The notes under the pieces are model-generated. The model was not told where the DNA came from. It was given only the letters and a program-made list of their open reading frames with translations, and made no database searches. A stretch of 64,000 bases of DNA from Octopus sinensis (Eukaryota), in NCBI RefSeq assembly GCF_006345805.1, contig NC_043002.1:83762001-83826000 (forward strand), read 5' to 3'. Numbering within the stretch: the first letter of the stretch is position 1; each line of letters starts with the position of its first letter. Positions 43,097 to 59,603 of the stretch are shown here, piece after piece. A program made the translations under genes and the position numbers.

Positions 43097-43135
43097 TATA
43101 AAAACAGGTCTTCACCAGAGAGAAAAGCCACTTGC
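43097..43135 (+). promoter_or_regulatory. TATA box and Inr-like site of the secreted-protein gene
   Basis: TATAAAAA at 43097-43104; CCACTT (YYANWY) with its A at 43130, 26 nt before the ATG. Confidence 0.5.
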
Positions 43136-43155
43136 AACGCAAGCAAGAAGCAATC

Positions 43156-43207
43156 ATGATGATGATTTCACTCCTTTTCATCTTAAGCACTGTTGCAATC
43201 GCCCCCG
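43156..43207 (+). CDS. Exon 1 (signal peptide MMMISLLFILSTVAIAP) of a secreted, putatively actinoporin-like protein gene
   Basis: ATG at 43156, hydrophobic 17-codon run, donor CCG|GTAAAT at 43208 (phase 1), TATAAAA 59 nt upstream. Confidence 0.72.
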
Positions 43208-45574
43208 GTAAATATAATTTTTTTTTTTTCTAATTGCTATCACTTTTGTAAATATCTTCGGGCTGGCCTGAATGCCACAACACCTTAAATTCTTCCTCTA
43301 TAATTTTAGGCTTCGCACCCTCGAAGGGAAATCGTATCATTGATAATTTGAGGAGTACGAAAGTCAAATTTCGTTGTAGAAAGGAAACGCGAATTATGCT
43401 AACTAGCAAAATCCGTGGAAATTCCACGGTTATTTTGAAAACCACAAGATTTCTGGAACTTTGCAGAAAAACATAAAATCCATAAATTTCTTTCCTTTCT
43501 TACCCCTTTTTTTTAAGCATTTGGTCCTCGAAAGGAAGTTCTCATGTAATACTGACATGAGGTGTTAGGAAACAACAATATAAAAATTATATTCTTTGTT
43601 ATACATTTGTAGGATCTTTTATCTTGTGAGTCGTTACATATTATTTTTATCGTCATGATAAAAAGGTGAACGTGCTATAGAAAGAGCCACATATAACTTT
43701 CTATTGAAAAATATTATTTCATTTCTCTTTGCATTTCCATTGTGACTATGCTAACAACTGTGTTGAAATGTGTTGAAAGAATAATATAGACAAAAAACAC
43801 CTTTAAAAACCTTACATATGGGAGGAAGACGAAATAATAATCTATCTATGATATTCTGCTATGATACGATTGTGACGCTAGGAAATCCTAATACTCTTTG
43901 TAACATCCTAACTTTGATGTTTGAGGAAAATGTATATGGTTGGATTTGAATCCAGAATACAACTAAGCGAAATACAGTATCCGTCCTACTGAGCTGTGGC
44001 TTAAATGTGTGTGTTTGCTTGTGTGTGCGTGTGTGTGTGTGTGTGTGTGTGTGTGTGTGTGTGTGTGTGTGTGTGTGTGTGTATACAGGAGAAATTATGA
44101 TAAACACAAATTTATATCGTTTGTTCCCCTCAAACATTTTTCAACATTGTGGTTGTTTGGAACCTCTGCATTTGATATCTCAAGGGCAATTGTCTTAGAC
44201 ATCCGATGTCTGTAACAGAATGAAATAAAGCGTTCCCCTTACGATTCGTTATCGTTAAACATATTATGCAAAGGTTCCAAAGCAATCTCAACAGTCAAAC
44301 GTTAGTAGGGTACGATTTATATAAACTTGTGTTTATTGTAATTTCTCCAAAACACGCACACATCATGTATACACTCACATACACGCACGCACGCATACAC
44401 ACATGCTCTGTGTGTATGTACGTTGTATGTATGCATGCTTGTATAATCACGCTTGATATAAATAATTACTTTTCCAGTCAGTTATCTTATTAATAATATA
44501 AATGATAGATCTATTATAGATAGCGTTTTCGAATCTTTTCCTTAGTTTATTAATCAGGTTCTGTTTCATAGTTAAGCGTTACATATGTCGACTGTAACAG
44601 AAAAATACTATCTCTCCAGAGAGAAACAGAAAACTTAGGTACAAATAACATTGAATTCATTAATAATCTTTACCAGATTAACAATAATTCTTTGCACTAT
44701 AGGCACAAGGCCTGGAATTTTATAAGTTAGGGGACTAGACGATTATATCGATCCCACTACTTGACTGGTACTTTATTTTATCGATCCCGAAAGGGATGAA
44801 AGGAAAAGTTGGCCTCGGGGGCATTTGAATTCAGAACACAAAGCCGGAAGAAATGCCGCAAAGTACTTTGTCCAAGATGCTAACAACTCTGCCAACTCAC
44901 CGCCTTAAAATGTGAAACAGTAAAATAATATATGACCAGATTTGGAAATACAATATGCCTGTTACAATTTGTTGGCAAATCTGGTGATGGAATCTAGAAA
45001 TTGCTCGGGAAGTTTCATTCTTTCATCAAGTCTTAGGGGGCTTAGATAAAATTGAATGTTCTCAATTTGGAAGAATTGATAGAAAGCTACAAATTTTGAT
45101 GGAGGAAAGTTATTAAATTTGTCGTATACCAAAATGAAAATATCCCATAAGACCCGATTTTCATCGAGTGGTGGAACTATCAATTTAATCTCCTTTGGTG
45201 AATGTTTTAATATCACGCAAGCGTTGATGGATTTTGTTTCATCCAATTTATTAAGAGAAAATAAGACGTCATTCCTTTCTAATCTATTGACCACGATTAG
45301 AAATCGCAGGTACGAAGAATATATTAAATGAAATGGCTGAGACTTGAGTTGAGTTTGTGTTAATCAAGACGCTCACTAGGACGATATTCACAACACTTCA
45401 CACGAAACAGTCTGCATTAAGAGCAATGATGTTTAGCAGGATTTAACAATAATATTAGACCAAGAACCATACTATTTATCATCATCATCATCGTCATCAT
45501 CAGTAGTAGTAGTAGTAGTAGTAGTAGTAGTAGTTGTTGTGTTGTTGTTGTTGTTGTAATAGTAGTAGCAGTAA

Positions 45575-45955
45575 GGCGACAAGCTGGCAGAAACGTTAGC
45601 ACGCCGGGCGAAATGCTTAGCGGTATTTCGTCTGTCGTTACGTTCTGAGTTCAAATTCCACCGAGGTCGACTTTGTCTTTCATCCTTTCGGGGTCGATAA
45701 ATTAAGTACCAGTTACGCACTGGGGTCGATGTAATCGACTTAATCCCTTTGTCTGTCCTTGTTTGTCCCCTCTGTGTTTAGCCCGTTGTGTGCAGTAAAG
45801 AAATAGGTATTTCTTTTGTCTTTACGTTCTGAGTTCAAATTTCGCCGAGGTCAACTTTGCCTTTCATCCTTTCGGAGTCGATAAATTAAGTACCAGTTGC
45901 GAACTGAGGTCATTGTAATCGACTACCCTCTCCCCAAAAATTTCGGGCCTTGTGC
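45575..45955 (+). mobile_element. SINE family gagctggcagaaacgttagc...ttctgagttcaaattcc; copies at 54665-54890 (+), 44700-44905 (-), 15900-16110 (+), 2880-2990 (-)
   Basis: Shared head and gtcgactttgcctttcatcctttcggggtcgataaa body; partially duplicated at this site. Confidence 0.8.
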
Positions 45956-57130: not shown

Positions 57131-58642
57131 CATACATACATACATACATACATACATACATACATACATACATCTAGTACATATAAATCGCATTATGCGT
57201 GTGTACTAACGCACACATTTCCACAATTCTCAACCGATTTTCTCCAAACTTTAAACACACATTAGTTATGTCCCAAGGATTTTCATGGACTATAACATTT
57301 TCCCCAGAACTCCCGCGTAAATGGATGTAAATGGACATAGTTTTTTTGTATGTTGGGTCTTCCATACTTTTTTTTATCAATTTATAAAAGAGAAAGGATT
57401 TTGTCTAGTTATTTACTTCGACAGTCTATCTGCGTGGTGACCCAGTCAGGAAACAGGATTTGGAGGTTGTCATTTTGTTTTCATGTAAATAAACGTTTAT
57501 GTTAATTTAAAAGATAAAAATCTTATTTAGCTGTTATTTTTAGCACAACACGTATCATGTATCTCTTTCATGTAAATAAATACTTATGTTAATTTAAAAG
57601 ATCTTCCAAATTCGTTGTATGTACATAGCTGTAGGCAGCAGGTAAACAAGCTGGCTATACAGAGAGAGGGCGCCACACAACATTGAGGTTCAGACATGTG
57701 ACTTCATCTCTTTCTCTCTTTCTGCATGGACACGCAAGCTATGAGGACGCAACCTGACTGGCTCTATCTTATGCCACAGGCCAGCTAGCAAATGGGAGCA
57801 TAGCACAGAAGACCATGGCCCTTCCACACCAACCATTCTGTTTGTCATTCCATTGAGTATGTACGTGTGGTTACAAATAAACGTGTTTAAGTTACAACCT
57901 TGCTCGTATGCGTTTTCTGTCCGGGTTTAGTACCAGCGAGATTACAGCCTTCTGAGAGTCATAATAGTAGCTCAATAACGACCGGCACCATCTAAATAGT
58001 TTTTTATATGTAGGGTCTTCCATGCATTTTTAAATCTATATCGTCTTGTATTGGCATTAGAGAATATTTTTGACTGATTAAATTGACTAGGGACTCCGTA
58101 CGTAATGAATATCCAATACCAAACAATCTTAATATCCATATTTAAGTTACATTAAACTTTGGCAAGCTTACCTTTACCTATTCTGAGTTACTTGAAAGGT
58201 GATGTTCCATTTCCTCTCTTCTATTTGTTAATACCTTTGTTTAAATACCAATGCGTTGTTTCATTTATTTACACATCCATTATGATATTTCGACTGTTGT
58301 CCATTGTTTCAAATACGTTTTAGCATTGAGGTTGTAGCCTTTTTAAACAATTACATATGATTCATCTCAAAGAATCAACCTCTAAATTTCAATGTTTGCT
58401 GGTCACTGTTGTGTACATCACAGGAGAACAGCTGTAGAAAGTATATTAACTGTATTAACTGTAGACAGTGGGATCACAACTGTGTGTGTGTGTGTGTGTG
58501 TGTGGTGCGCGTGTGTGTGTGGTGCGCGTGTGTGTGTGTATGTGTGTGTACGTGTGTGTATATATTCAAAATGTGACCGCGTGTGTACCGTTGGCGATTT
58601 TTCCCCTCTGTCTTCCCTTCTCTGGATCTTTCCTTCTCCTAT

Positions 58643-58677
58643 GTTTCCGAAGAAGAGCTCCGCTCGAAACGTTAAAC
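58643..58677 (+). ncRNA. Minimal type I hammerhead motif in a Penelope-type terminal remnant (58560-58790)
   Basis: GUUU-CCGAAGA-A-GAGC-ucc-GCUC-GAAA-CG-U-U-AAAC: stem I 4 bp, stem II 4 bp, palindromic ACGU stem III; U4 reads C. Confidence 0.55.
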
Positions 58678-59415
58678 CCTCCTTCTTTCCTTCTTTCCTG
58701 AGCGTCCAATAATACTATTTTTGTTCCACGTCCTCGCGTTGTTGTGTTTTCTCTTTGTGTTTTCATGTTTGGTTTAACTATATATATATATATATATATA
58801 CAACGGGTTTCTTTCAGTTTCCGTCTACCAAATCCACTCACAAGGCTTTGGTAGGGCTGAGGCTATAGTAAAAGACATCTGCCCAGTGTGTCTCACTGTG
58901 AGACAGAACCCAGAACCATTTGGTTCGGAAGCAAAGGGATTCTGGGAAACCAGTGTTTCGAGATGATCTGTCTCGTTACTCAGAACTATCCGAAACTTTT
59001 CAGCTTAAACAATCCACTGGCATCGTTTATATTTTCAGCGAACAAAATTGCTTGTTGATCAGTGCCAGTTGTATGCTAATCGATAAATAAAAATCGTTAT
59101 TTGCACTATGTACGGCGAGATTTGAAACGTTGATTAATATATTTATTCCTAATCCGTTCTAGCAGATTCGAACGGATTATATGCCGGTCGCTGTTATGTA
59201 GATGTTAAATGGTAGTGAGAAAAGGACAAGAATTAAAGAGCATCTGATTTCAACGAAATTTTCAATCAAAAAGTTAGAATAGGAATGAAGAATTTTGGGA
59301 TTGTCTTGCAATGGTGAGGGTAGCGAGTAGAGGAACTGTGAGAAAGAGAAGTTTGTGTGAGGTAGTGAGGGATTACGTGAGCATCTTTTATTTTATATTT
59401 TTCGAATATTTAAAG

Positions 59416-59603
59416 GTGCGGCAGCAATTGAGGTTGGACTTGAAACAGCTGATATGGTCGTAAAAGAAGCACGATCAATGTGGTTGCACTCACAATCCAC
59501 CGATATTATGAAAACCGAGCATATTCCTTACCACTGTAGCTTAGCTGCCAGTTTCAGCAATCTTACCTCAGCTAAGGTCAAGGCTATGGACGAAGAATTG
59601 CAG
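59416..59603 (+). CDS. 188-nt coding exon (SAAAIEVGLETADMVVKEARSMW...YHCSLAASFSNLTSAKVKAMDEELQ) of the same gene
   Basis: T-rich tract then aaAG at 59415, stop-free, phase-1 start matches the microexon, donor CAG|GTAAGA at 59604. Encodes an amphipathic helix followed by a Y-x9-N-x-T strand motif. Confidence 0.78.

Follow-up and report, generated by a model that had tools for sequence, protein, structure and literature searches.

The cytolysin fold, represented by the Cyt toxins of Bacillus thuringiensis and by volvatoxin A2, is built around a sheet with a helical layer on either face, in which three successive strands connect back to an earlier strand (PMC5390079). In the mechanism proposed for it, the helices move aside, the sheet attaches to the membrane, and oligomers make the membrane permeable; a pocket for lipid, situated between the helices and the sheet, has also been proposed, and one member, Evf from Erwinia, binds lipid and forms no pores (PMC5390079). 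The family is described as microbial and fungal, with a limited taxonomic occurrence (PMC5390079). Here, we compare these proteins with the product of LOC115213512, an Octopus sinensis gene whose 5' part lies in a stretch of 64,000 nucleotides (the window; CM016864.1:83,762,001-83,826,000). Three exons in this window are, with near certainty, the 5' coding exons of LOC115213512, and the gene belongs to an uncharacterised multi-copy family for which a Cyt-like fold is plausible, though somewhat short of probable.

Gene structure and the microexon of LOC115213512

Over the 23,845 nt compared, the window does not differ by a single base from the O. sinensis locus, whose record (L003; window position equals L003 position plus 40155) served as the reference for exon mapping. 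Exact spliced mapping of XP_029638381.1 yields a gene of ~24.5 kb on the forward strand, with six coding exons, introns that are all GT...AG and a product of 288 amino acids (aa). Residues 1-85 of this protein are exactly the peptide encoded by three joined segments of the window (255 nt), microexon included. These segments, together with the start codon, the canonical splice sites and the phases (1, 1, 0), had been proposed as a hidden gene in an initial annotation made from the sequence alone, and all of them coincide with coding exons 1-3. The gene is not hidden, and the call is nothing new, since RefSeq already holds a model of it as LOC115213512, under the label "uncharacterized protein".

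Exon 1 (43156-43207; L003 3001-3052; 52 nt, ending in phase 1) runs from ATG ATG ATG to CCC C G and ends at the donor G/GTAAAT. It encodes MMMISLLFILSTVAIAP and the first base of the next codon, which is the hydrophobic core of a putative signal peptide, and it is conserved in O. bimaculoides and O. vulgaris. The hydrophobic N-terminal signal noted in the initial annotation is borne out by residues 1-19, the strongest hydrophobic window of XP_029638381.1. On the same strand, 52 nt upstream of the ATG, TATAAAAA (43097-43104) can be read as a TATA box; TATA-like motifs are common in AT-rich DNA, and we treat it as a candidate. A compound (TAG)n(TGG)n(TAG)n microsatellite occupies 42950-43035, ~60 nt upstream of this box.

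Intron 1 (43208-46875) leads to exon 2, a microexon of 15 nt (46876-46890; L003 6721-6735; phase 1 to phase 1), and is followed, after the microexon, by the 12.5-kb intron 2 (46891-59415), which is filled with many simple repeats and transposon remnants. Exon 3 (59416-59603; L003 19261-19448; 188 nt, phase 1 to phase 0) lies between the acceptor TTTAAAG/GTGCGG and the donor TTGCAG/GTAAGA, and encodes an amphipathic segment together with the family motif IPYHC-LAAS-x-NLT ... MDxEL. The first 4.4 kb of intron 3 (59604-64000) complete the window and contain no coding exon of the gene: the three forward frames of this interval gave no match to Pfam and revealed no downstream exon, and tblastn of the family against it gave no match either. 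The remainder of the gene had been expected beyond the window, and this is where it lies. Exon 4 (L003 24624-24824; 201 nt; window-equivalent start 64779) begins 779 nt past the window end, followed on the same strand by exon 5 (L003 26429-26650; 222 nt) and exon 6 (L003 27337-27525; 189 nt).

The same six-exon structure is found in the O. bimaculoides orthologue LOC106875294, whose protein is 83% identical. Searched exhaustively with HMMER, the exon-3 peptide retrieved O. vulgaris CAI9724080.1 (283 aa), identical over all 62 residues (E 2e-31), and the 90% cluster of this protein also contains XP_029638381.1. The three entries represent the same gene and its orthologues, and all are annotated just as uncharacterised or hypothetical. 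A comparison of O. sinensis with O. bimaculoides shows an unbroken frame of 288 codons, with 0.138 synonymous (dS) and 0.097 nonsynonymous (dN) substitutions per site; the resulting dN/dS of 0.71 suggests a fast-evolving protein. All three octopus species conserve the frame.

The microexon deserves separate consideration. Its sequence, TTGCCGGTGGAGTCA, is flanked by TTTTTCAG on the acceptor side (TTTTTCAG/TTG) and by GTGAGT on the donor side (TCA/GTGAGT), and it contributes VAGGV/S, with which the signal peptide appears to end. It is part of both the O. sinensis and the O. bimaculoides RefSeq protein, its splice sites are identical in three octopus species, and the sole difference within it is GGA GTC versus GGT ATC, that is, one synonymous change and one V to I exchange in O. 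bimaculoides. In O. vulgaris, the model CAI9724080.1 lacks it, with exon 3 following exon 1 directly, and differs solely by this omission. In the O. vulgaris genome (OX597819.1, record L001, about 13639-13678), the microexon and both of its splice sites are present and identical to those of O. sinensis. The model without the microexon may be either a mis-annotation or a genuine skipped isoform: the direct junction of exon 1 to exon 3 is also in frame, and since both forms keep the frame, the microexon may be alternatively included.

A multi-copy family in cephalopods

Full-length and profile searches retrieved cephalopod proteins only, from Octopus, Argonauta hians, the cuttlefish Acanthosepion pharaonis and transcript-derived collections. 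Each octopus genome carries at least five loci. In O. sinensis, four loci accompany LOC115213512, namely LOC115213439, LOC115212730 (with several isoforms), LOC115232471 and LOC115210937, with counterparts in O. bimaculoides and O. vulgaris. The first of these is a tandem paralogue (280 aa, 45% identical) on the same strand, 21 kb downstream of LOC115213512 (CM016864.1:83,850,981-83,872,137), and an adjacent pair, LOC106875293 and LOC106875294, is also present in O. bimaculoides. No other family exons were found within the window by tblastn, and an exact-sequence look-up of one paralogue for its chromosomal placement returned no record.

The LOC115213512 protein shares 32-83% identity with the other members, and matches to the exon-3 peptide range from 100% down to 31%. 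Despite this spread, 30-31 alignment columns are invariant, including the motifs W-F-x-N, R-Y-P-D and S-G-I-x-G; in the exon-3 motif P-Y-H...L-A, the residues P, Y, H, L and A are nearly invariant across the family. Every full-length member has a hydrophobic N-terminus, which probably directs secretion, and lacks a second hydrophobic segment. The mature parts mostly contain a single cysteine and have isoelectric points of 4.9-7.0. Larval RNA sequencing of Sepia esculenta (PMC10466719, PMC10571815) contains intronless contigs of ~1 kb that encode full-length members, and the family is therefore transcribed and spliced.

Neither Pfam nor NCBIfam contains an entry that matches a family member above threshold. 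A family profile searched against PDB sequences gave chance matches only (E ≥0.47), the same profile gave no meaningful match in bacterial and archaeal genomes, and a literature search on the locus, the protein and the UniProt accessions found no paper. Some members carry automatic UniProt names, 'EF-hand domain-containing protein' (A0AA36AMS7, A0AA36AMR0) and 'Serpin domain-containing protein' (A0A0L8I6K1). These names look unreliable, as EF-hand matches are sub-threshold and limited to two members (E 0.019) and a serpin match is absent. One metagenome contig, Ga0247783_1041536 (328-763, record L014), holds an intron-split, eukaryotic relative of ~40% identity, which reads WFVNLIGDDDIV ... 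GILRYPD ... PYFKLFRIQL; because of it, the family may reach beyond the cephalopods represented in databases.

Predicted fold and competing explanations

What might such a protein do? Two AlphaFold2 models, both built from the same 12-sequence alignment, give a first indication. Model 1 (XP_029638381.1) has a predicted local distance difference test score (pLDDT) of 66, rising to ~78 over residues 100-270, and a predicted template-modelling score (pTM) of 0.57. In its element order, two helices (70-96 and 104-112) precede a long hairpin (117-138); further helices span 145-193, and three consecutive long strands (195-212, 219-236 and 239-257) lead to a C-terminal helix (259-282); residues ~70-283 thus appear to form one alpha/beta domain. 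This predicted core is encoded by exons 4-6, while the exons within the window, after the signal peptide, the amphipathic segment and the P-Y-H motif, reach only as far as the beginning of the first core helix. When model 1 was compared with the PDB by Foldseek, ranks 1-5 were all Cyt1Aa (E 7e-4 to 2.5e-3, probability 0.75-0.97) and volvatoxin A2 came at rank 8, with unrelated folds at a probability of 0.1 or less. Model 2, built for a paralogue with 46% identity, is of poor quality (pLDDT 50) and has the same order of elements; its best PDB matches are Cyt1Aa, Cyt2Aa (1cby), volvatoxin A2 and Cyt2Ba, and E-values over both models span 7e-4 to 9e-2. Given the quality of model 2, its agreement with model 1 lends weak support.

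The predicted architecture shares its element order with Cyt1Aa (3RON/6T14), Cyt2Aa (1CBY), Cyt2Ba (2RCI) and volvatoxin A2 (1PP0/1VCY): a helical pair, a beta-hairpin, a helical layer, three long consecutive antiparallel strands and a C-terminal helix. Like these toxins, the octopus protein is predicted to be a soluble single-domain protein, with a core of similar size. Unlike them, it begins with a eukaryotic signal peptide and has a conserved additional N-terminal segment of ~60 residues (exon 3); it shares no detectable sequence similarity with them, and it is of animal origin, whereas the known family was described as microbial and fungal. A literature search for Cyt-like or volvatoxin proteins in molluscs and cephalopods found nothing relevant.

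From the Cyt-like assignment we tentatively infer that the protein acts on membranes or binds lipid. Long antiparallel strands would form a sheet packed between helical layers, as in the Cyt toxins and volvatoxin A2. If the fold holds, the protein would most likely be a soluble monomer whose helices leave the sheet upon membrane contact, and their release would lead to oligomerisation and membrane permeabilisation; alternatively, within the same fold, a lipid-binding pocket could lie between sheet and helices. With gene identity and this mechanism weighed jointly, we consider the account slightly more probable than improbable as the best overall explanation. Actual cytolytic activity we regard as rather doubtful, and a non-lytic lipid-binding or structural secreted role as about as likely as cytolysis.

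Several points weigh against this account. The template-modelling (TM) scores to Cyt and volvatoxin structures are 0.20-0.34, with root-mean-square deviations of 9-13 Å, and no family member matches PF01338 (Bac_thur_toxin) or NCBIfam at E-values up to 10. The second model has the low pLDDT given above and shares its shallow 12-sequence alignment with the first. The exon-3 motif is modelled at low confidence, and no counterpart of it was identified in Cyt toxins. M1I283, an unnamed viral protein, matches the predicted structure better than anything else found, so that the nearest relatives may not be cytolysins. In the gene structure itself, the support for the microexon comes from gene models and conservation.

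An explanation that does without lysis we judge quite possible, if below an even chance: the family would consist of secreted non-lytic cephalopod proteins, either carriers of lipids or small molecules or components of the extracellular matrix, mucus or egg coat. The resemblance to Cyt toxins would then be superficial, or the lipid pocket would be shared without pore formation, as in Erwinia Evf, whose membership in the cytolysin-fold family (PMC5390079) provides a precedent. The low TM-scores fit such a role, as do the lack of a hydrophobic segment besides the signal peptide and the detection of transcripts in cuttlefish larvae as a whole, not in venom glands specifically. The match lists also contain, at low probability, other helix-grip or lipid-binding folds (START, Bet v 1/PYL, Ups1). 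However, four types of Cyt and volvatoxin structures rank first over two models, with probabilities far above those of the lipid-carrier folds, and the dN/dS of 0.71 together with tandem and dispersed duplication fits proteins of defence or offence better than housekeeping carriers, neither of these points being decisive.

A further explanation, compatible with the others and in our view unlikely though worth attention, relates the family to large DNA viruses, by descent or by exchange, with a function as in the viral homologues. It stems from a search of predicted viral structures (BFVD) with model 1, in which M1I283 matched at E 8.4e-14 with a probability of 1.00 and an identity of 27% (258 columns), and M1HBT0 matched at E 1e-6; these two and A0A6G6ADX5 surpass all PDB matches. 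Proteins of Borely moumouvirus (A0A6G6ADX5), Edafosvirus (A0A3G4ZYQ2) and Megaviridae followed at probabilities of 0.6-0.99. This suggests that M1I283 and the octopus family are homologous. The two best targets come without name or organism in the result tables, and we take their accession series to denote chlorovirus proteins. On the other hand, the TM-scores of the viral matches do not exceed 0.45, and the targets differ in length from the octopus protein (367-371 aa or 187-192 aa versus 288 aa). Pattern scans of 2.9 million viral contigs brought up no relative, be it with an alignment-derived pattern or with W-F-x-N ... R-Y-P-D ... G-I-x-G, which gave one chance match, in a repeat protein; and tblastn against phage records detected no relative of the family. 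A literature search on the viral accessions found no paper.

The initial annotation had assigned the gene to the actinoporins and echotoxins, that is, to pore-formers with an N-terminal amphipathic helix and a beta-sandwich that the downstream exons would supply. The protein is very probably not an actinoporin, and this form of pore-former is highly improbable for the locus. In its favour, actinoporins, echotoxins, conoporins and coluporins (PF06369) are likewise secreted with an amphipathic segment after the signal peptide, and the octopus protein has an acidic, moderately amphipathic segment behind its own. This segment is real but has modest support: its hydrophobic moment, 0.45, is reached by 4% of shuffles, and a helix is predicted there at low confidence (pLDDT 42-56). 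Amphipathic helices are not specific to actinoporins. What else speaks for the assignment are the motif resemblances to known members proposed in the initial annotation. Against the assignment, PF06369 gave no match at E-values up to 10, be it with the 85-residue peptide (0 families), with the full proteins or across 12 family members. Exon 4 begins with IAIAATNRVLAK (IAIAATNRV) in place of the expected start near xG, and the full protein, predicted to contain at least six helices and five long strands, does not build an actinoporin beta-sandwich; this is the outcome that the initial annotation had itself named as refuting the family assignment. Actinoporins comprise a mature beta-sandwich of ~175-180 residues with two short helices, in contrast to the 280-310 aa and mixed alpha/beta composition of the octopus family, and they are absent from the top 50 PDB fold matches of both models. 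In a published genome survey, the number of actinoporin-like genes is 0 for five cephalopods, among them O. sinensis, O. bimaculoides and Sepia pharaonis (PMC9645577). The broader idea of a secreted, membrane-active protein, if true, would need a different, Cyt/volvatoxin-like fold.

That the three segments are chance open reading frames (ORFs) joined by chance splice-like sites can be dismissed, even though open AG-to-GT segments of at least 186 nt are common (93 on the forward strand of the window, for which reason such a segment is by itself no evidence) and nearly any stretch of a 16-kb interval would offer an in-frame AG...GT segment of 15 nt, as it is refuted by the identical RefSeq protein, by orthologues and paralogues that match exon 3 down to 31% identity, by the six-exon structure repeated in O. 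bimaculoides and by the spliced transcripts of family members. Signal-peptide-like first exons outside simple repeats are rare, with two on the forward strand, and self-BLAST shows the exons to be single-copy within the window and thus not part of a repeat, the nearest SINE-like sequence (resembling short interspersed elements) starting only at ~59615. The 85-residue peptide gave no match to Pfam or to PDB sequences. A word-indexed protein search with it also found no match, despite an identical protein in the collection, which makes this result a short-query false negative. Three tetratricopeptide repeat proteins among the matches of the exon-3 search were set aside as chance or low-complexity similarity.

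Genomic surroundings and significance

Upstream of LOC115213512 and on the same strand, the window contains a second real gene: positions 15177-15548 hold the C-terminal exon of a homologue of OPA3 (optic atrophy 3; PF07047, E 8e-23). A LINE-type retrotransposon (long interspersed nuclear element) at 22666-24694 on the forward strand has two ORFs, one with an endonuclease/exonuclease/phosphatase domain (E 1e-6) and one with a reverse transcriptase (E 4e-11), and this 2-kb stretch has the highest GC content of the window (0.46). A DDE_3 transposase ORF at 40600-41088, also on the forward strand, is the remnant of a DNA transposon, and a Mos1/mariner remnant in three ORFs (HTH_48, Transposase_1, DDE_3) lies on the reverse strand inside intron 3 (62206-63208). 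A SINE-like repeat (59615-59800) starts 11 nt after the exon-3 donor, and read-through into it produces the tail '...SLDFGHAGTPS' of the ORF at 59454-59672. Further copies of this repeat are found at 1986-2168, 34589-34755, 37463-37647, 39270-39383, 60836-60885 and 63622-63798, with 65-82% identity between copies. Simple repeats are very abundant across the whole window.

For the annotation of octopus genomes, the comparison shows that the O. vulgaris gene set omits a conserved 15-nt microexon. Removing the actinoporin label from this locus matters as well: surveys report no cephalopod actinoporin-like genes, and the locus leaves that unchanged. The strong match to a viral protein raises the question of gene exchange.

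The interest of LOC115213512 lies in its protein, a member of a lineage-restricted, multi-copy, secreted family without domain annotation or literature. To our knowledge, no metazoan members of the Cyt/volvatoxin fold family have been described. It is tempting, if at present unlikely, to see in these proteins an unrecognised animal branch of the Cyt/volvatoxin superfamily, multi-copy, fast-evolving, secreted and membrane-active, with viral homologues and a use in venom, mucus or immunity. Should the Cyt/volvatoxin-like fold prove true, it would extend a cytolysin fold of bacteria and fungi into animals and would provide a new candidate effector family for research into cephalopod venom and immunity.

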